A stretch of DNA of 62,948 nucleotides, filler included, from Octopus bimaculoides (lineage: Eukaryota): NCBI RefSeq assembly GCF_001194135.2. It is 5 parts of 5 records of this genome, joined end to end, with 100 filler letters (N's around TTAATTAATTAA, not from the genome) between each part and the next. Parts side by side here need not be neighbours in the genome. Positions count along the whole stretch, not along the records: positions 52,385 to 62,948 come from NC_069007.1; 4 more parts are not named here. One strand, given 5' to 3'. The notes under the pieces were generated by a model. That model worked only from the letters and a program-made list of their open reading frames with translations, was not told the origin of the DNA and ran no database searches. The translations under genes and the position numbers were made by a program. Shown piece after piece: positions 52,285 to 62,948 of the stretch (positions are counted from its first letter, which is position 1; each line of letters starts with the position of its first letter).

Positions 52285-52948
52285 NNNNNNNNNNNNNNNN
52301 NNNNNNNNNNNNNNNNNNNNNNNNNNNNTTAATTAATTAANNNNNNNNNNNNNNNNNNNNNNNNNNNNNNNNNNNNNNNNNNNNGAACACTGGGGTCGAT
52401 GTAATCGACTCATCGCCACCTGCCCCCCAAAGCTGCCCTTGTGACAAAAATTTGAAATACATATATATACATATATATATGTTGACACCAGAAAGGAACA
52501 ATTATGAACTTTTCTTTTAATTACATTTTTTAAAATATGTATTTTTGATAAGGTTCGTTTTTTCAAGAACCGAAACATGTTAAATATCTCTGAGAAAATT
52601 ATAAATTAAAATTCATTTTTTATATATTGGCGTTTTCAAACTTCTTTTTTATAAACATATATATATATAGGGAGAGAATTCACGAACAAAAAAAAATAGG
52701 GAGCGATCCTCTCAATTGATTCCTCTGAAATTCAGATTACCATTGTCTGCTCCAAAAACTTAGTACTTAATCTATCGTTTCTTTTGCAGAGAAGCTAAGT
52801 TGCGGCTACGTAAAAAAAGACCAGCACCGTTTTACGAGCGGTGGGGCTGGAACAACACACAAACACGCACGCGCACACACAAACACGCACGCGCACACAC
52901 AAACACGCGCGCGCACACAAACACGCACGCGCACACACAAACACATAG

Positions 52949-53106
52949 CGGGTTTCTTTCAGTTTCCACCTACCTCACTCGCAAGGCATCAGTCGATCCA
53001 TTGCTATTGTAGAAGACGCTTTCCTAAGATGCCGCGCAGTGGGACTGAACCGGAAAACGCGCGGTTGCAAAGCGAGTTTCTTAACCATGCTGCCATTCCT
53101 GTGCCT
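52949..53106 (-). mobile_element. Family B SINE 5' half
   Basis: Head and GGAAACTGAAAGAAACCCG on the minus strand. Confidence 0.7.
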
Positions 53107-53229
53107 GATATGATGCAAAATGCATATTACACTGAACGCATAATGAGTGAATACGTACACGTCGTCGTGGCCACTGAACCTGCCAGAAATAGCAAGTAAT
53201 TATCCACAAACTGCTCAATATTGTCTTTA

Positions 53230-53410
53230 AAACGTGGTCATTTTATATTGGAGAACCTTCTGTCCAATCACCCTGCTGTTGATCGAACTCAAACAGGTAT
53301 GGTTGCCTATTTGATGAAAGGCAAGGACCTCACTTTGTACCACGAGGTTTTATGTTCAACCATTTTGTACAACAACTTAGACAAGTATATCCTCCGTTTG
53401 GCTCAAATGA
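53230..53410 (+). mobile_element. Very old maT HTH relic (copy belonging to unit E)
   Basis: LMKGKDL...LYNNLDKYILRLAQM aligns weakly to maT HTH/linker relics at 57790-58300 and 61160-61235, at the same position relative to the exon. Confidence 0.4.
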
Positions 53411-53598
53411 CCGAACATTTTCCTTGATTTTGGTATTTTGAGAGATAGAGAATAAGTAAAAATCCATATAAAAGTGGTACGTGATAAAACTGAGTCACAA
53501 TAATAACGAATCTAAAATATCTCACAGAAAAGGATAACTACAGCTTCTTTGCTATAAGAAATATAGATTTACAAAATACAAAGCTAAAAAAAACTTAC

Positions 53599-53700
53599 TT
53601 CTAGGAGTGCACACAAGTCCATATTCCTGACAGAGGCAAGTCATATGAGGCTTCTCAATTGTGATTCCGACACCGTATTGTATTCCGTCCATGATACATT
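53599..53700 (-). CDS. 4-Cys module gene, exon E (CIMDGIQYGVGITIEKPHMTCLCQEYGLVCTPR)
   Basis: TAG acceptor, GTAAGT donor, 102 nt, phase 1/1, C-x19-CxC-x6-C. Its flanks are a more diverged copy of the same unit. Confidence 0.85.
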
Positions 53701-54184
53701 CTATAACCGAAGCAAAGTGACACATTTAGATTTGATAGATTAGAAAATACCAGTTGATGCACAATGTTATATTTAGAAGCAGTAAAGCGTCTAATTGCTG
53801 CAGTGACATGGGAATTCTAAATCACAACTGTGTAAGGGATCACCCAAATAGTTTACCAAGGTTGAGACATAAATAGAGAGTAGTGGCTATAGACATAAAT
53901 TAGCAAATTATAGTCACAGGAAGAAGTGTAACCAATCAGTTAAAATATATATGAAACAAAAATGATATACACGACAAGCAACATTACAGTCTCCAAGCCA
54001 TTAATTGCGATTGAACACAAATGGACATAGTTGCGAACCGAAATCTTTATCCATCCCTCCCTCCATCCAGCCAGCCAGCCAGTCAGCCAGCCAGCCAACC
54101 AGCCATCCATCCATCCATACATACATACATACATGCATGCATACATACATCTTGGCCGTCCACTCGTGACCAAGGAAAACCATT

Positions 54185-54620
54185 GCTGACCTTCAGGAAC
54201 ATTGTGCGCTCTAGGACTAACTTATATTTTGCATTTGCGGCTCCGTTGGTGGCTAATGAGCCCAGCTCTTGACAATCATACACGACTGCGAACATTGCAC
54301 ACCAAGCTTTCCCCATTCATGCTGAATACGTGCTCTCTCAAAAGTGTCGATCCCCTCCTTAACCTGCTTCCTCCATCTTTGGCGATGACAGACATTGTTC
54401 TCCCAGTCAGTGTCCTGCATATCACAGGCCTTTACTGAGGACTTGACACAGTCCTTAAATCGCAGCCTTGGTTTCTGCTAGGGTCTCGTTCCATTCACAA
54501 GTTCCCCATATATCATCTGCTTAGGAATCCTGCTATCCTTCATTCTAATAAGGTGTCCAGTCCAACGTAACCGGTGCTTGTGCACCATTGCCTCAATACT
54601 CAACATATCAGCTGTCCTCA
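54185..54620 (-). mobile_element. RTE LINE 3' end
   Basis: SIEAMVHKHRLRWTGHLIRMKDSRIPKQMIYGEL..G.R, RLRFKD, SRAGLISH. Confidence 0.9.
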
Positions 54621-54624
54621 GATA

Positions 54625-55605
54625 GCCACTCTTGCTAGCAGCACAGATGATACAAAAGTCTCTCAGAGGATACAGAACCTTGGAGACGTTGTGCATCTGA
54701 AACGGAAGTTGAACGCAATATACAAGTGTGCTAAGGAAAATAAAATGCAGTTTAAGGTTGGAAAATTCCAAGCCCTGCGCTATCAATGAAAAGCAGACAG
54801 GATACACTGGACCAAGAGAGACTGCAATCTCTGAATCAAAAGGCGTGCACAACCTGGCCAATGACTCGAGTAATAAAGCATCTTTCTATAAGCATTTTTC
54901 TATGTTGGCAATTAAACGCAGACAATCGATTTTCCAGAAAGAGAGAACAATTAACTGTGATAGACATCAGGAGGACATTGATCCTCAGTCGATTGGATTA
55001 CTGCTTCCAACTGTGGTCGCCACACAGTTTAAAAATAACGACGGAACTCGATGCATACCAGCGAAGCTACACAAAAAAAATCATCTCAAGGTGACATGTC
55101 AGCCACTGGGAGAGATTGAAAAAGTTAAGGCTCTACTCCTTAGAACGAACGAAGGAAAGATATGCAGTGATATACAACTGGAAAATCCTAGAACTTGCAC
55201 CAGAATTTAGCACTGTCAGTTGCATTAACAGTCAAACGGGTCGCCACTGCTTAGTACTAAAAACCCTATTGCCATCAGGATACAGGACCAGATACTGCAA
55301 CAGAAGTTTCTGGGAACCCACAGCAGTATCAAGGGTTCACGGCTCTTCAATATCCTCCCAGAAAGCCTGAGAGACCTACATGGGGAGGAGGTAGGCGTCT
55401 TCAAAACTAGACTGTATCTCCTCCAGTCAAGAGTTCCGGGTGAACCTACCTCGAGGCAAGAAACGCAGATGAAGGTAACAACGTCAAACTCCCTCATTCA
55501 CCAAATGCCACACATCAGAGGAGGTTTAGTGAAAGTGTATCAAAGCAAACGGCAGTGCTAAAGCATGGCTTCAGCTCCCGAGCTGAAACTAGAAAAGGAA
55601 AAAGT
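54625..55605 (+). mobile_element. CR1-group LINE RT and 3' relic
   Basis: SS(T)DDTKV, ENKMQF...KFQALRY, SRLDYCFQLWSP, LKKLRLYSLER. Confidence 0.85.
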
Positions 55606-55611
55606 AAAGTG

Positions 55612-55689
<78 letters not shown>

Positions 55690-55696
55690 TGTGTGT

Positions 55697-55733
<37 letters not shown>

Positions 55734-56004
55734 CATGGACATTTGGGTAAGAATTTCACTTTCCACCACATGATTCTGTTCGATGGTCTTGCTCGCTAGC
55801 TTCAACAAATATATTCTTCAAGTGACTCCAGTTGACCAAAGTTATATTTGTTGATTTTCATAGACGGAGAATGTGCAGAAGTCCATATATAAATAGCAGT
55901 TAATAAAGTTGTATAACAACGATGATGAATCCGTTATGTCACATGGAAAAGAATAATCATAGCTTCGTTTATATAAGAAATACAGATTTAATAAACAAAC
56001 TTAC

Positions 56005-56121
56005 TATATTTCGCGCAGCATGATATAACTCCGTTTGGAAAGCATCGGCATTCCGAAAACGAATCTTTACTCACTAATGCTCCGACCGTGTACAAAGCAT
56101 TTTTATGCACACATACTTCAG
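56005..56121 (-). CDS. 4-Cys module gene, exon D (EVCVHKNALYTVGALVSKDSFSECRCFPNGVISCCAKY)
   Basis: TTCAG acceptor, GTAAGT donor, 117 nt, phase 1/1, C-x20-CxC-x7-CC. Confidence 0.85.
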
Positions 56122-56392
56122 CTGAATAATATCAAAATAATATATAGATTAGATAGATCAGAAATTAGTAGCTGATACCAATGTATTGTTAAGGTTAATC
56201 AAAGATGTTAGTGAACGTGGAGATATTTAAGGATTATTATATTTAAGGATCTTTCAACCTATTATAACAAATCATTGGCTCATACAGGTTTGAAGGAGGA
56301 ATTGTGGTATATTAAAATTATTTTGTATACATGTCTACGTTTAGAAATGTGTTTGCAGACTGTAAATTTGTGTGTATGTTTCTGTGTGTGTG

Positions 56393-56434
<42 letters not shown>

Positions 56435-56521
56435 GGTTTTTAAACTTTTAAATTTTCATATTCAAAATGTAAGTTCTTATGCTATATTGGTAACGGTTGC
56501 TACATCCTCTGGAAAAATTAT

Positions 56522-56564
<43 letters not shown>

Positions 56565-56762
56565 GTATGTATGTATGAATGTATGTATGTATATATGTAT
56601 GTATGCATGCATGTATATATATGTCTGTATGTATGTATGTATGTATGTATGTATGTATGTATGTATGTATGCATGTATGTATGTATGTATGTATGACNNN
56701 NNNNNNNNNNNNNNNNNNNNNNNNNNNNNNNNNNNNNNNNNNNNNNNNNNNNNNNNNNNNNN

Positions 56763-56803
<41 letters not shown>

Positions 56804-57559
56804 GTATGTATGTATGAATGTATGTATGTATATATGTATGTATGCATGCATGTATATATATGTCTGTATGTATGTATGTATGTATGTATGTATGTATGTA
56901 TGTATGTATGCATGTATGTATGTATGTATGTATGACTGTATGTATATTTATGTTCTTCCGCCCTTTGACCGGTCTTATTTTTCATCCTGCAGGGTGTCCA
57001 ACAATCAGCCCCCACCCCCACCCCGGCCTCATCAAGCCAGCTTGATGGGGTTGCCAGTTTAGTCGCCGATGCAGCTTGTACTGGGTTACATGTTATCCAA
57101 TGACGTAGACTAGATCTTTTCGACTTTATGTTGCCCGTGTTCAGAGAATGGGATTGGATTTGTGTAAATCGTTTTCCGACTATAAACAAAAAAAGCCAGG
57201 TATCGCACAGGTATCGCTCGAAAAAGAAAAACTCAGACCTAGCACAAAAATGGTTGGTTGCAACCTTCGCATTTGTGGGAATTTCGAGTAGAAGATGGCA
57301 ATACTCAAACACGGGTTTGTAGTCATAATGTATGTTTGTATGTATATCCATACACATACATGTGTGTACATGTATGCATATAGTTATAAATATGTGCACG
57401 CATGCGTGTTTGTGTATGCATGCGTGCATATATCGTTATGTATGTATGCAATCATGTGTATATTTATGTTTAGCATAAGCGAGGTGTTTCAAAATAATTT
57501 ATTACTTTCTTCAAACCTATTAAAAGGCTTCGATTTCGCTCAGATCAATTATGTAGGAT

Positions 57560-58635
57560 AAAACACTGACACAAGAAATGAAAATATATGCAGTCATTGT
57601 TGCCATGTGCGTAGAACACTGCGGTTTATAAGTAACCACCTTCATAATTTTGCAAGACTATTTTTTTGCTCAGTTCGGATGGAATTGCAAGTCTCTGATG
57701 AGAATGTTTTGCTTATATGAAGAGAAACAACATTCTAACTGTTCAAACACTATAATTACACCAGAAATCACGAATTGTGTCCCTTGATCACAGGAAATCA
57801 ATGAAGGCCATTACGAAAGATCGTCAGGTATCAGAGTGTAGACTATCAGAATTGAGGTGCAGGACATTCAATACNNNNNNNNNNNNNNNNNNNNNNNNNN
57901 NNNNNNNNNNNNNNNNNNNNNNNNNNNNNNNNNNNNNNNNNNNNNNNNNNNNNNNNNNNNNNNNNNNNNNNNNNNNNNNNNNNNNNNNNNNNNNNNNNNN
58001 NNNNNNNNNNNNNNNNNNNNNNNNNNNNNNCATAATTTTGCAAGACTATTTTTTTGCTCAGTTCGGATGGAATTGCAAGTCTCTGATGAGAATGTTTTGC
58101 TTATATGAAGAGAAACAACATTCTAACTGTTCAAACACTATAATTACACCAGAAATCACGAATTGTGTCCATTGATCACAGGAAATCAATGAAGGCCATT
58201 ACGAAAGATCGTCAGGTATCAGAGTGTAGACTATCAGAATTGAGGTGCAGGACATTCAATACACGTCGAATGCACAGAAGAGAGACCAATTCATGTTTGC
58301 AATGAGGAAGGAAAAACTTTCGATCTCTGTGAAGCAACTGCATAAAAAGTTTAAAACACGCTCACAAACATTCTTCCCTGAAGATTAAAACTTCAACCAA
58401 GACAAAGGTGTAACAGGTGAAATGCCAGACGGTTAATTACAGGTCCTTCTGATGTGCACAGAGTAATGTACACTGTGTTTCCAGGAATTGCAACGGCTTT
58501 ATGTGTGGTGAATAAGAAAGGTCATATATGCTGCCTCACGCCTTACTGCAGTATCATAGAATCAATGCTGATGAATACGTGGAGATGTTGAAGACAGTTA
58601 TTAAGCCCTGGCTGGATGAAGCATGCACGGAAAGG
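57560..58635 (+). mobile_element. Old maT transposase relic (with a gap-flank false duplication inside)
   Basis: EMKIYAVIVA, HTH, RDQFM, NFNQD, RINADEYVEML.TVIKPWLD. Partial copies at 60075-60215 and 60935-61240. Confidence 0.8.
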
Positions 58636-58788
58636 ACAAAATTTGAGATAACTAAAGTTTTGAGTGTCGATTTTGACAGATGGGGGAATGGGTTGACACT
58701 CGTATATAAATGGGAATTGATAAAGTTCTGTATTAGTGACAACGAATCTGTTATACTACACAGAATAGGATAATCACAACTTCGTTTA

Positions 58789-59677
58789 CAAGGTGTAGTC
58801 AAGAAGTATCCAACCTTGATTTTTTTTTTTGCATAAAATAATAATGCGTGAGCAAAATCCACATGGGTATTAGGTGGCCACGTCCTTCCTGAGCATGCGC
58901 AAAAAGTCTCGTATGTGTAGGTTGTGCTATTCGCCCATAGTGACGAGTTGAGTACAGACGTGAAGAATATGCTATGCGATTTTACTTTTTGAGTCAAGAT
59001 AACCGAGCACATTGAGCAAAGATGCTGTATCAAATTCTGGCAAAAACTTGGTGATACGCAAAACCAGACTCTCGAGAAGATTCAGAATGCCTTTGGATAT
59101 GATACTAGGGGGAAAACACAAATAAAGGAGTGGTACAACCGGTTCAAAAATGGCCACACCTCAGTGGACAGTGAGCCTCGTTGTGGTAGAACATCGACGA
59201 GAAGAAACGACGAAATGATTGCAAAGTTTCTTCATCACCTTCGTGAAACTATNNNNNNNNNNNNNNNNNNNNNNNNNNNNNNNNNNNNNNNNNNNNNNNN
59301 NNNNNNNNNNNNNNNNNNNNNNNNNNNNNNNNNNNNNNNNNNNNGTGAAGCAAAACACACCACTTGTTCGTCAGGCGTCCTGCTCCCCAGACTTAGCTCC
59401 GTGAGACTTTTGGCTATTCCCAAAGCTCAAAAAAAAAATACACTCAAAGGGAGAAGATTTGAGACAACAGAGGACACGAAGCAAAATTCTAAGGCACAGC
59501 TCTACAGCATCCCAAAAAGTGATTCCCAGAAATGTTTCCAGCAGTGGCAGGAACGCTGGCAGAAGTGTGAAGACTCTCAAGGCGAATACTTTGAAAGAGA
59601 GACTAAATCAAAATGGTGAGTTTTTAAATATTACTTGTTTTTTGGCCAAAGGTCGCATACGTTTTGACTACACTTCG
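58789..59677 (+). mobile_element. Internally deleted mariner (Mos1-type HTH, SPDLAP.DF) with TA duplication
   Basis: ~30-bp TIRs, EQRCCIKF...WYNRFKNG, SPDLAP*DFWLFPKLK. Removing it restores the conserved intron motif CTTCGTTTATATAAGAAA. Confidence 0.92.
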
Positions 59678-59712
59678 TATATAAGAAAAACAGGTTTAAT
59701 AAACAAACTTAC

Positions 59713-59823
59713 GTCGAAGATGGCAAGTAAAAGCTCCTGAATCAGTGCACTCGCAAATATAACCTCTGTCTTCAATCACTGTTCCGACCGCGAACTTACC
59801 GTTAAAGTATTGACACGTCTTAG
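59713..59823 (-). CDS. 4-Cys module gene, exon C (KTCQYFNGKFAVGTVIEDRGYICECTDSGAFTCHLR)
   Basis: TTTTTCAG acceptor, GTAAGT donor, 111 nt, phase 1/1, C-x19-CxC-x7-C. Confidence 0.85.
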
Positions 59824-59829
59824 CTGAAA

Positions 59830-60028
59830 AATATTAATTTCAAATTCTGATGTAAGTCCAGTAAGTTCGGGATGGGGTCTAGTCGATTACATCGACCCAA
59901 GTGCTCAACTGGTTAAAATTTTAGTCACTCCGATAGGATGGAAGACTAAGTCGACCTTGGCGGAAAATTTAACTCAAAATGCAAAGACGATTCTACCAGC
60001 TAACGATTCTATCAGCTCGCCGCTTTCT
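59830..60028 (-). mobile_element. Family C SINE immediately upstream of exon C
   Basis: Head GCGGCGAGCTG; core GTCGATGTAATCGAC; tail ends at the acceptor. Confidence 0.8.
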
Positions 60029-60398
60029 CTGCTGAATAATTTATTTAGTTTAGTGAAATCAGAAATTGTAATGGCTTTATGTGTGATGAATAACCAAGGT
60101 TATATATGCTGCCTCACATCTTTCTGTAGCATCATAGAATTAACGCTGCTGGATACGCTGAGGTGCTGGAGACAGTTGTTAAGCCCTGAATAGATGGGGC
60201 ACGCACGGAAAGGTTAAAATTCGAGTCGACCAAAGTTCTGAGTGTCGATTTTGGCAGACGAAGAATGTGTAGACGCCCATATATAAATAGCAATTAATAA
60301 AACTCCGTAGCAGTGATAAAGAATCTATTATGTCACACAGAACAGAATAATCATAACTTCGTTTATATACGAAATACAGATTTAATAAACAAACTTAC

Positions 60399-60509
60399 GC
60401 GGTACACGGCATATAATATTTCCTGTGCTTACGCACTTACATAGGAGACCGTCGTTTTCAATCACTTTTCCAGCCTCGAAGACAGTTCTGTCAAGAACAC
60501 ATTTCCCAG
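60399..60509 (-). CDS. 4-Cys module gene, exon B (GKCVLDRTVFEAGKVIENDGLLCKCVSTGNIICRVP)
   Basis: TTTTTCAG acceptor, GTAAGT donor, 111 nt, phase 1/1, C-x19-CxC-x7-C. Confidence 0.85.
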
Positions 60510-60515
60510 CTGAAA

Positions 60516-60737
60516 AATATTGATTTGAAATTTTGGTGTAAGTCCAGTAAGTTCGGAGGACAGGGTATAGTTGATTCCATCAACCCCAGTACTCAACTGG
60601 TTCTTATTTTAGCGACCCCGAAAGGATGAAAGGCCAAGTCGAACTTGGCGGAATTTGAACTTAGAACGTAAAGACGGATGAAATGCCGATAAGCATTTTG
60701 CCCAGTGTGCTCACAATTCTGCCAGCTCACCGCTTTC
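60516..60737 (-). mobile_element. Family C SINE immediately upstream of exon B
   Basis: Head GCGGTGAGCTGGCAGAA; core GCCTTTCATCCTTTCGGGGTC; same insertion point as the copy at 59830-60028. Confidence 0.85.
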
Positions 60738-61432
60738 TCAGTTGAATAATATTGAAATTAATATAATTTAGAGAAATCAGACATTTGTAGGTAATGCAAA
60801 TAGCTTGTTGATATTATTCTAAGATGTTAGTGAACATGCAGATAGCTCAGGATCATTCAACTTAATATAACAAAGCATTAGCTCATAGTAGTTTGAAGGA
60901 GGAATTGTGATATATATTATCAACAAGCGTCGGGTTAAGAGGAATAGACCCACCTATATTACCATGCAATACAGGTGTCTTAACGGTTATAGCCAAAAAC
61001 ATTTTTCGTTACTCAAGAAACATATAATTCGTATGAAATTGGAACACTTCTGGCAAGAATGTTTTAATTCTATCAAGAGAAAAAAAGCATTCTAAATGTT
61101 GGAACGCAAAAAGGACACCACAATTCATCATACGTGTTCAAATTATTATCTATGATGATCCTAGGAAATTAATGAGGGTCATCGAGAAAGATCATCAGGT
61201 GACGGAGTGGACTATCAAAAATATGGTGCACAACAACAGTAAGAAGATCAAAATCTGAGTCGTCCAAAGTTTGTAGAGTCGACTTTGGTAGATGGAAAAT
61301 GTGCAGAAGCCCATATATAAATAGCAATTGATAAAACTGGGTAGCAGTGATTATAAATCAGTTATGCCACACAGAACAAAATAATCATGGCTTCGTTTAT
61401 ATAAGAAATACAGATTTAATAAATAAACTTAC

Positions 61433-61546
61433 GTGGAGGAGAAATGCAGTTATAAGTTAGGTTCGAGTAGCAGTCGCAATGCCAAAGTGGATTACTGAGA
61501 TCATGGATCTTTCCCAACTTTTCTTCCAAAACTTCACAGCTCATCT
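61433..61546 (-). CDS. 4-Cys module gene, exon A (MSCEVLEEKLGKIHDLSNPLWHCDCYSNLTYNCISPP)
   Basis: TTCAG acceptor, GTAAGT donor, 114 nt open, phase 1/1, C-x19-CxC-x7-C, NLT sequon. Lies in a duplicated intron unit. Confidence 0.8.
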
Positions 61547-61914
61547 CTGAATAATGTGAAAATAATTTATAAATTAGACAGATCAGAAATAAGTAGCTGA
61601 TACAAATGTATTGTTAAGATTAATCTAAGGCGTAATTGAACGTGCAGATATTTAAGGATCATTCAATTTATTATAACAAAGCTTTAGCCCATAGTTGCAT
61701 GAAAGAGGAACTGTGATATATAATCTACAGGGTCGAGTAAAGACGAATAGATCTATGTATATTACTTGGTATAATCCACCATATAACACGGCAGTGACAA
61801 CAGTCATAGTCTAAAACATCACAGGTAATATAATGTCATTCTTCCACAACTTCTAATATTGCCCAAAGTATTGAGTCTTTAGACGTAGCTAAATTAACAA
61901 CTAATAATAATAAT

Positions 61915-61966
<52 letters not shown>

Positions 61967-62948
61967 GGAGGAGGAAAAGTAACTTAACCATGTCATGGAT
62001 CGACTATCGTAAGGCGCACGATATGATCCCACATTCTTGGATTATGAAATGTGTGAATCTATTTGGTATTGCATCGAATGTTGAGCGATTGCGTGGAAAA
62101 AGTATGGCGAATTAAAGGACGGACCTGACAGCATACGGAAGAAGTTTAAGGACAGTAGAAATTAGGAGGGGCATCTTCCAAATGGACTACCTGTCCCCAC
62201 TGATCTTTGTACTGTGCTTGATACCACTGACACTTATTCTGAGGAAAGCAAAAGCTGGGTATGTATTCAAAAGCCGCCATCAAAAAGTCAACCATTTATG
62301 GTAAAGATGAAGCCCAACTCAGTTCTCTCAATTAAGACTATGTCTGGCTTCCTATTCTCAATCTCATGGTCGCACTGTATCATAAAATCCCATAGGATCT
62401 TTGCATTTCTATTTTCGACAATGCCCTCAGGTTTTTGGTTGTACCAATTTTTTTCTCTGTCAAGTCCATACTTGTTGCAAAGTGTCCAGTGGACAAGCCT
62501 GGCTATATTGTCGTGGCGTCTCTTATATTCCTTCTGAGTTAGTGGCGTACATTGTCTGGTAACATGCCATACGGTTTCACCGTTTTGTTCACAGATTCTA
62601 CACTTATCACTTTCTGATGTGTTGTCTTTTCTGTATTTTACGTAGTTTGTTCTTAGCGCTTGCTCTTGGGCAGCACAGATTAGAGTCTCCGTTAACGGTT
62701 TTAGATACTTTTAGTCATCCACAGCGATCTTTTTTCTCTGTGTCTTGTCTTCAACATCCCTATGAAATTGTCCATGCATTCTTTTCTTTACCCACCTATT
62801 TTCAGTTTCATTCGTTTTCAATTTCTTGTATAGTGCTTTATCTTTGCAATCTTTCATCCTCTCGTTTTCAGCTGACAAGGTATGCGATAATGAAGAAAGA
62901 AAAGTCGATAGATATGACAGGTTATCTTGGGAAGTTAAGCAGTTGTGG
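61967..62948 (+). mobile_element. R4/Dong-like non-LTR element with an internal inversion
   Basis: Plus 61967-62320: RT (WIDY.KA.D..PHSW, IRRGIFQ.D.LSP). Minus 62321-62870: MHGQF...AAQEQAL...CRIC...H...C...RHDN...ILWDF...KPDIVL. Plus to the end: ADKVCDNEERKVDRY. Confidence 0.9.

Follow-up and report, generated by a model that had tools for sequence, protein, structure and literature searches.

The window analysed here is a stretch of 62,948 nucleotides from Octopus bimaculoides made of five joined parts, and its last part (positions 52385-62948, from NC_069007.1) carries on the minus strand five exons that each encode one small module with four cysteines (Cys). These exons belong to LOC106883955, and on balance we read its product as a probably secreted chain of fast-diverged modules, reduced from the type of subdomain 1 (SD1) of the von Willebrand factor type C (VWC) domain or of pacifastin, that could act as a multivalent binder. 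What is new is the reduced, SD1-only four-Cys module, missed by curated models, in a lineage-restricted and probably secreted protein. What was already known is the gene, present in RefSeq and UniProt with a VWFC label, and the fold.

The exon array and its gene model

The array spans 53599-61546, where coordinates are positions in the joined stretch and the minus strand of 52385-62948 was read; positions given as L001 refer to the chromosome-level record. The exons are as follows.

61433-61546, minus strand: exon E1, 114 nt, phase 1/1, module 1, (M)SCEVLEEKLGKIHDLSNPLWHCDCYSNLTYNCISPP
60399-60509, minus strand: exon E2, 111 nt, phase 1/1, module 2, GKCVLDRTVFEAGKVIENDGLLCKCVSTGNIICRVP
59713-59823, minus strand: exon E3, 111 nt, phase 1/1, module 3, KTCQYFNGKFAVGTVIEDRGYICECTDSGAFTCHLR, the module used for modelling
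56005-56121, minus strand: exon E4, 117 nt, phase 1/1, module 4, EVCVHKNALYTVGALVSKDSFSECRCFPNGVISCCAKY, with a fifth Cys
53599-53700, minus strand: exon E5, 102 nt, phase 1/1, module 5, CIMDGIQYGVGITIEKPHMTCLCQEYGLVCTPR, splicing to the stop exon at L001 23071-23111

Each acceptor is a pyrimidine-rich tract followed by CAG or TAG, and all donors are GTAAGT. All lengths are multiples of 3 and each exon has one open frame, the remaining two holding 1-5 stops per exon. Spliced together, E1-E5 form 555 stop-free nt with Pro, Pro, Pro and Lys as junction codons. The four Cys are invariant across the modules, which have about 37 residues each, with a spacing of C-x19-C-x-C-x7-C in modules 1 to 3, x20 and x7 in module 4 and x19 and x6 in module 5. 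Four of the five modules have an aromatic-x2-G core and, 3-4 residues ahead of the last Cys, a Gly; module 1, the most divergent, has neither.

In shuffled exons the required frame was open with P = 0.06-0.11 each (product over five exons, 5e-6), and the module Cys pattern appeared in 0 of 100,000 shuffles. Seven AG...GTAAGT pairs on this strand span a multiple of 3 between 99 and 120 nt, and all of them lie inside E1-E5. The five exons are real. An Rfam scan of this part of the window gave no match.

In a search of 5.8 billion proteins, one protein, XP_014790598.1, matched the spliced peptide at 100% identity over 100% of the length. This 197-aa protein is the 'uncharacterized protein LOC106883955 isoform X2' of Octopus bimaculoides, and UniProt A0A0L8I5Q6, a 'VWFC domain-containing protein', has the same sequence. 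The junctions of the public gene model match those of E1-E5 exactly, with an annotated coding start at an ATG at 61544, inside E1. This part of the window is identical to CM046627.1 (GCA_001194135.2) and corresponds to L001 8597-19160. The five minus-strand exons, splice sites, phases and Cys pattern of the initial annotation are therefore exactly those of a public gene model; the exons are, as it said, missing from the open reading frame (ORF) track, a bacterial-style list of ORFs of at least 60 aa that contains none of the five. Its description of a hidden gene has to be given up, as LOC106883955 is an annotated, uncharacterised gene. No paper naming LOC106883955 turned up in the literature under its locus or accession, and two 2026 cephalopod venom preprints contained no VWC, fibronectin or pacifastin term.

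The coding sequence ends outside the window.

L001 23071-23111, same gene: stop exon, 41 nt, ending …YMPNIETTRILS and a stop codon, 5.1 kb past E5 and beyond a 1.9-kb gap at L001 19161-21065

Two annotation sources agree on an identical 197-aa product that includes this 41-nt terminal exon. The acceptor used by isoform X2 at L001 23071 is AG (…cgaAG followed by AGTATATG). For the 200-aa isoform X1 (…TPRNYEEYMPN…), the intron would have to end in TG, 9 nt upstream at L001 23062 (…gtccTG followed by ATTACGAAGAG), which makes this isoform a non-canonical splice form or else an artefact of the annotation.

Fold and family of the module

AlphaFold2 models of module 3 reached a pLDDT of 90.2 with a 47-module alignment and 91.6 with the five window modules only. 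Both place strands at residues 3-6 and 9-12 and then at 16-19, 22-26 and 32-36, a two-stranded hairpin followed by a three-stranded sheet (2+3 strands), as in the topology of the fibronectin type I (FN1) domain. Nearly every Foldseek match listed for the two models (all of the top 46 and top 40) falls in the FN1-like (FnI-like) fold group. Structurally closest are the E modules of MUC2, MUC5AC, MUC5B and VWF (TMq 0.75-0.80, root-mean-square deviation (rmsd) 0.8-2.3 A). They are accompanied by the VWC domains of CCN3 (TMq 0.77-0.79, rmsd 1.6-1.8 A), collagen IIA (TMq 0.73-0.75) and NEL (TMq 0.72-0.85), with an rmsd of 0.8-2.2 A over VWC domains as a whole. Fibronectin 2F1-3F1 follows at TMq 0.66-0.74, and the solved pacifastins fit more poorly at 0.51-0.59. 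The individual E-values of these matches are not significant (best 0.046) because the query has only 38 residues. The module is predicted, with high confidence, to take the FnI-like fold of VWC SD1.

In SD1 of CV2 VWC1, disulfides join Cys9 to Cys31 and Cys29 to Cys38, and Cys26 bonds to subdomain 2 (SD2; PMC6270503). The octopus spacing of x19, x1 and x6-7 is that of CV2 VWC1 Cys 9, 29, 31 and 38 (x19, x1 and x6), so the modules have the Cys spacing of SD1 minus the Cys that tethers SD2. By analogy with CV2, each module may be closed by disulfides between Cys I and III and between Cys II and IV, which we propose with moderate confidence.

Pfam was scanned at E up to 10 with the whole annotated protein, with single modules and with a hypothetical merged protein that is described below. 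The fn1 model (PF00039) matched none of the three, and the VWC, Pacifastin_I, SVWC and PSP94 models matched neither the annotated protein nor single modules. The sole match, Fn1_2 (PF23003), scored 21.8-23 bits where its cut-off is 27, and no curated Pfam model reaches threshold on the annotated protein.

Profile comparisons reach further. A profile built from the octopus modules alone aligned in hhalign with the six-Cys modules of distant relatives at 95.9% probability (E = 5.6e-9, 38 columns), and its matches to PDB sequences stayed at chance level. With a mixed module profile the top match was MUC5AC (E = 1e-13), solved pacifastin inhibitors were found at E 1e-6 to 1e-3, and PSP94 chains, seen with this profile only, at E of 0.2-0.3. 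A phmmer search of PDB with the spliced peptide returned paramyxovirus fusion proteins and a fibronectin chain (E = 0.09), weak matches that were judged compositional.

An exhaustive phmmer search of 1.84 billion representative proteins found only seven non-self proteins at E <= 1e-3, five of them metagenome proteins and two hypothetical proteins from the fungus Smittium simulii, the closest at E 1.9e-9 and ~30% identity. All seven are long arrays of modules of ~36-42 residues. Pfam assigns the six-Cys relatives to VWC (positions 1-41 of 57), Pacifastin_I or FnI_RECK. The Smittium proteins (P0005 and P0007; PVU88284.1 and PVU84805.1) and, in part, P0004 have the four-Cys pattern of the octopus modules, and for the two fungal proteins none of the three families gives a match. 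No cephalopod or mollusc orthologue was found among the predicted proteins searched, other cephalopod genomes lying outside the search. Two side observations concern these relatives. Smittium simulii, which dwells in insect guts, carries C-x17-21-C-x-C-x6-8-C arrays without any Pfam match in the fold group, and P0004, a metagenome protein with the same four-Cys array on a 34.7-kb contig, has an N-terminus (…LLASVVGLVAACSEE…) that resembles a bacterial lipoprotein signal.

Comparison with known families places the module by its remote profile homology and shared fold in the FnI-like superfamily. The nearest family is VWC, whose SD1 (as in CV2 VWC1, CCN3, collagen IIA and NEL/NELL) has the same C-x19-C-x-C-x6-C spacing, a TMq of 0.72-0.85 and phase-1/1 exons. 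However, a VWC domain has ten Cys with CxxCxC, CCxxC and SD2, whereas the modules of E1-E5 have four (five in module 4), carry CxC only, lack SD2, CCxxC, the first Cys of CxxCxC and the Clip, do not match PF00093, and stand as five SD1-only modules in tandem; CxxCxC is kept only in U1, an exon of the same locus outside the window. With the FN1 domains of fibronectin, tPA and factor XII they share four Cys with CxC, ~40 residues on one phase-1/1 exon, the 2+3-strand topology and tandem arrays, but their loops are shorter, PF00039 does not match, their sequence links lead to VWC/pacifastin-type modules, and they belong to a mollusc protein for which orthologues were not found. The E modules of VWF and mucins (MUC2, MUC5AC, MUC5B and FCGBP) are likewise short and FnI-like, with ~35 residues, and are the best structural match, yet they occur singly after VWD-C8-TIL in large D assemblies, and the octopus protein lacks those domains.

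The six-Cys arrays (P0003, P0006, P0008 and P0009, and the insect pacifastin inhibitors) are also tandem, with modules of 36-42 residues and a common G, aromatic residue, CxC and G-x3-C. Pacifastin modules (PF05375) are characterised by six Cys (C...CNxCxC...G...CTxxxC) and a match to the family model, whereas the octopus modules lack the model match and the second and sixth Cys, which amounts to one disulfide. The arrays of Smittium simulii and P0004 have nearly the same spacing as the octopus modules (phmmer E 1.8e-7 to 5.6e-5) but are only ~30% identical, and their hosts are a fungus or uncultured organisms. SVWC (PF15430, eight Cys) and PSP94/beta-microseminoprotein (PF05825, ten Cys) differ in Cys number and have no Pfam match. 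The module is best described as a member of the FnI-like fold group, outside the fn1, VWC and pacifastin families.

The FN1-like fold proposed by the initial annotation is borne out by the AlphaFold pLDDT of 90-92 and by the Foldseek matches to VWC, fibronectin F1 and VWF/mucin E modules, and its view of a lineage-specific protein agrees with the lack of close relatives and the seven distant ones among the representatives. Its argument that the gene is novel because FN1 is chordate-restricted does not hold, as the modules match VWC SD1 spacing and link by profile to VWC/pacifastin-type modules, such modules occur in uncultured organisms and a fungus, and U1 has CxxCxC. The Pfam comparison it proposed with fn1, VWC, SVWC, pacifastin and PSP94 likewise yielded nothing beyond the sub-threshold Fn1_2.

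Upstream exons, duplicated units and intronic repeats

Two further exons lie upstream of the array, outside the window.

L001 69-120, upstream of U1: signal-peptide exon, ending in phase 1, encoding MLKYLSIVCFFTAAILTG, mean Kyte-Doolittle 2.3
L001 2664-2801, same strand as E1-E5: exon U1, phase 1/1, encoding DCFNVTCEFNGMPHEIGEVFQIPCYRCECTLNGTSCKNTCNSENE, with a true CxxCxC

U1 carries seven Cys and reaches 18.3 bits against Pfam VWC over positions 1-38 of 57, below the cut-off of 27.6. A search with U1 led to UniProt A0A0L8I5R8, a 65-aa protein also named 'VWFC domain-containing protein', which consists of MLKYLSIVCFFTAAILTG plus U1 and terminates in 'GI' and a stop by read-through of the phase-1 donor of U1. 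Between this model and E1 lie 7.2 kb, including a 4.3-kb gap (L001 4289-8596) that could hide more exons. From their sequences, A0A0L8I5R8 and LOC106883955 are probably halves of one secreted gene split by this gap. Joined hypothetically, the signal-peptide exon, U1, E1-E5 and the tail give 261 open codons, with 28 Cys after the signal peptide, an even total because U1 (seven Cys) and module 4 (five Cys) are both odd.

The annotated 197-aa XP_014790598.1 itself has no signal peptide. Since the signal-peptide exon lies upstream in a compatible phase, the secretion foreseen in the initial annotation is plausible. A heuristic scan of L001 724-4288 and 8597-9998 for such an exon gave no credible candidate; one of its hits was a translated ATT microsatellite. 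Such an ATT run translates in naive scans to a false poly-Leu 'signal peptide'; (ATT)16 stands upstream of E1, and (AC)n, (AT)n and (CATA)n follow in the introns.

The exons are embedded in homologous flanks, some of them interrupted by elements resembling a short interspersed element (SINE), and two more units of the family, D1 and D2, lie beyond the stop exon.

61053-61432, minus strand: conserved intron downstream of E1, 9 mismatches in 373 aligned nt against D2
60199-60398 (E2), 55805-56004 (E4) and 53399-53598 (E5), minus strand: downstream flanks of other units, matching the E1 flank
59678-59712, resuming below 58789 past a mariner insert, minus strand: downstream flank of E3, matching the E1 flank
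61547-61729, minus strand: conserved intron upstream of E1, 80-87% identical to other units
56122-56312 (E4) and 60743-60943 (E2, displaced by a SINE-like insert), minus strand: counterparts of the upstream intron
60510-60742, minus strand: SINE-like insert, 233 nt, directly 5' of E2, its T-rich 3' end being the current acceptor tract
59824-60034, minus strand: SINE-like insert, 211 nt, directly 5' of E3, present in D1 too
L001 30444-30557, minus strand: unit D1, 114 nt, open, with a fifth Cys
L001 31722-31827, minus strand: unit D2, 106 nt, frameshifted

Homology between units reaches ~180-200 nt to the 5' side of each exon and 200-450 nt to the 3' side, which suggests that each phase-1/1 exon was duplicated together with the intron sequence on both sides; over its first 150 nt, the intron downstream of E1 is 83-86% identical to the E2 and E4 units. 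In E2, E3 and D1 the SINE-like insert sits between the ancestral acceptor region and the exon. The ancestral acceptor reads CAA in E2 and D1, and the T-rich 3' end of the insert provides the active one. Because the insert is common to these three units, they were duplicated after the insertion. Further SINE-like copies are found at L001 1114-1217, 1929-2012, 28105-28299 and 28659-28827. The downstream flank common to the same three units is antisense to an 81-aa ORF at 58528-58773 (plus strand; MLPHALLQYHRINADEYVEMLKTVIKPWLD…), which has counterparts downstream of E2 and D1 and looks as though it came from a transposase. In that case the unit would already have contained a piece of an old transposon when it duplicated.

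D1 and D2 have the opposite orientation to the gene and lie ~7-9 kb past the stop exon; the UniProt fragment model A0A0L8I6Z6 joins them, with D2 read in its second frame.

The exons have diverged far more than the introns around them. Exon identity is 30-52% in Cys-anchored codon alignments, with dN of 0.7-1.9 and dS from 0.9 to unbounded, both saturated over ~35 codons, against K = 0.15-0.46 for the downstream introns over their first 150 nt. Identity between flanking introns is 65-99%, and the drop towards the exons falls at the splice sites. Between E1 and D2 there are 24 mismatches in 183 nt upstream, 48 in the 106 nt of the exon (~55% identity) and 9 in 373 nt downstream (exon against downstream, Fisher 3e-27). 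The flanks of this pair differ too, with 87% identity upstream against 99% downstream (P = 3e-6), an asymmetry around D2 that favours recent conversion or recombination. A mosaic origin of D2, with the upstream flank from E4 and the downstream flank from E1, appeared with 60-nt flanks only and failed over 175-183 nt.

Simple positive selection was ruled out as a sufficient cause of the exon divergence because silent sites are saturated as well. Either the introns have been homogenised by gene conversion that stops at the diverged exons, or exon sequence has been replaced or hypermutated. Snake three-finger toxin genes present a similar picture, with introns more than 85% identical, exon segments at 12.5-50% and Cys positions kept, a pattern named ASSET (PMC2474615). 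The snake case involves separate paralogous genes, the octopus case tandem exons within a single gene and an inverted neighbour.

Assembly gaps and a transposon occupy the intron between E3 and E4.

57875-58030, within 57643-58262, strand not applicable: intronic gap with a 232-nt duplicate on both sides, 99.6% identical
56698-56762, within 56524-56936, strand not applicable: intronic gap with a 174-nt duplicate on both sides, 100% identical, microsatellite-rich
58789-59677, plus strand: mariner-like transposon with both terminal inverted repeats (…AAGTGTAGTCAA…) and a TA duplication

All three N runs of this part of the window sit in the E3-E4 intron and break no exon; the same runs are present in L001, where the gaps stay open. 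Because duplicates flank the first two, these gaps look like unmerged contig overlaps, probably joined with Ns, which would inflate the length of the intron. The third, at 59253-59344, lies inside the single mariner-like element, the left part of which matches HTH_48 (Mos1-type) at 26.4 bits, above the cut-off of 24.1. Of its transposase, just the N-terminal HTH region and the C-terminal region can be seen, so that several hundred bases lie hidden in the 92-N gap or else this copy carries an internal deletion. Host intron homology resumes directly beyond the element. BLAST searches with the unit flanks found no orphan flank adjoining any gap, and hence no sign of a hidden exon, with gap lengths being uncertain. 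Since E3 ends and E4 starts in phase 1, the frame carries across the gaps.

Two open stretches on the minus strand are intronic or flanking repeats outside the gene. Both resemble the C-terminal part of a non-LTR retrotransposon protein, one at 62380-62920 (…CRICEQNGETVWHVTRQC…), with a weak zf-RVT match (E = 0.014), and one at 54478-54861 (…HRLRWTGHLIRM…). Microsatellites occupy 61918-61965, 55619-55730, 56398-56429 and 56526-56934.

Competing readings and significance

The reading we favour, with moderate confidence, is that of a probably secreted chain of reduced VWC-SD1/pacifastin-type modules. The module would be a VWC or pacifastin-type module cut down to two internal disulfides, Cys I-III and II-IV, by loss of SD2 or of the last Cys, along with the single Cys formerly bonded to the lost part. 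The annotated 197-aa model would then be the 3' half of a longer gene with the order signal peptide, VWC-like CxxCxC module, possible gap-hidden exons, five modules and a tail of 13-16 residues. Its product would be a secreted chain of disulfide-pinned modules, a proposal that carries moderate confidence. The array would have grown by tandem duplication of the intron-exon-intron unit, and the sub-lineage of E2, E3 and D1 by duplication after a SINE had inserted at the acceptor. Meanwhile the exons would have diverged to saturation with frame, splice sites and Cys framework kept, and the introns would have stayed similar or been homogenised by gene conversion with tracts stopping at the diverged exons.

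As to function, the comparison with immune, venom/saliva or reproductive proteins suggests, with low confidence, an extracellular multivalent binder with diversified module surfaces; a conserved developmental regulator is less likely. Binding might take place via edge strands as in FN1 or via the SD1 face as in VWC.

Several points weigh against this reading. The Foldseek E-values are individually weak, the disulfide pairing comes from the analogy with CV2 SD1 only and not from the model, and the Gly and aromatic residues of the consensus are missing from module 1. In both RefSeq and the original annotation, the signal-peptide/U1 model and E1 are kept separate. The frameshift in D2 shows that some members of the family are decaying, and the saturation of dN and dS over so few codons means that selection is not distinguishable from age. 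No transcript-derived protein appeared in the search of 5.8 billion proteins, no paper names the gene, and function is assigned by analogy only.

A bolder proposal, to which we give perhaps a minority chance, is that of an octopus-lineage family of secreted effectors, built from minimal two-disulfide SD1-only FnI-like modules and kept as hyperdivergent exon cassettes between conversion-kept introns.

It is improbable that E1-E5 are a decaying or untranslated relic, an array severed from its signal peptide and annotated since its frames are still open. An annotated start at an ATG in an internal-type exon without a signal peptide, the lost consensus residues of module 1, the frameshifted 106-nt D2 nearby and the lack of a transcript-derived protein or an orthologue in the two large searches would all suit a relic. 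Against it stand five exons that, although saturated, are all still open and have kept four invariant Cys, perfect GTAAGT donors and lengths that are multiples of 3, together with the identical product from two annotation sources, including a 41-nt exon 5.1 kb away, and the in-phase signal-peptide exon and U1 upstream.

A precursor of pacifastin-type serine-protease inhibitors, as reported from octopus posterior salivary glands, deserves similarly little credence. Its appeal lies in the closest sequence relatives, which score strongly on Pfam Pacifastin_I, and in the match of the mixed module profile to solved inhibitors. However, neither the annotated protein nor single modules match Pacifastin_I, the structural fit is TMq 0.51-0.59 against 0.66-0.85 for VWC, FN1 and E modules, there are no dibasic processing sites between modules, and the second and sixth Cys are absent. 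In pacifastins these two Cys form the third disulfide, next to the inhibitory loop. Pacifastin precursors are reported to be highly expressed in the posterior salivary gland of O. vulgaris (PMC7693380). The fold group is therefore used in octopus secretions, but LOC106883955 is not thereby placed among them.

A chordin/crossveinless-like modulator of BMP/TGF-beta that binds its ligand through SD1-type modules is very unlikely: SD1 is the ligand-binding subdomain of chordin-family VWC domains (PMC6270503 and its reference 46), and the CV2 VWC1 spacing and the UniProt name VWFC domain-containing would agree with it, but high-affinity binding by CV2 VWC1 needs an N-terminal Clip (PMC6270503), whereas here 2-3 residues precede Cys I, and hyperdivergent exons with no orthologue and ~30% identity to anything known are atypical of conserved developmental regulators. 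Just as remote is a bona fide FN1 (PF00039) repeat protein outside chordates, for which the central CxC among four Cys, the phase-1/1 exons, the 2+3-strand topology, the TMq of 0.66-0.74 to fibronectin 2F1-3F1 and the 21.8-23 bits of Fn1_2 speak, and against which stand the missing PF00039 match, an Fn1_2 score under the 27-bit cut-off, the better links to VWC/pacifastin-type modules and to VWC SD1 spacing, and a U1 in the same locus that keeps CxxCxC and matches VWC positions 1-38.

For annotation, the findings mean that a single gene, interrupted by an assembly gap, probably underlies both fragmentary public models, with a short terminal exon and a signal-peptide exon that both fall outside the window. 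For the family, the reduced-module reading shows how a VWC-type domain can shrink to a free-standing two-disulfide module and be multiplied by duplication of phase-1/1 exons. The result converges on the FN1 pattern outside chordates and bears on the relation between FN1 and VWC, while leaving intact the view of true FN1 as chordate-restricted. Saturated exons between introns that are 65-99% identical are a signature of toxin, immune and reproductive families, and LOC106883955 is in this respect a candidate fast-evolving secreted protein of the octopus. If the bolder proposal of an effector family were true, the gene would be a within-gene analogue of toxin and immune gene diversification, and possibly a new cephalopod family in venom, mucosal immunity or reproduction.

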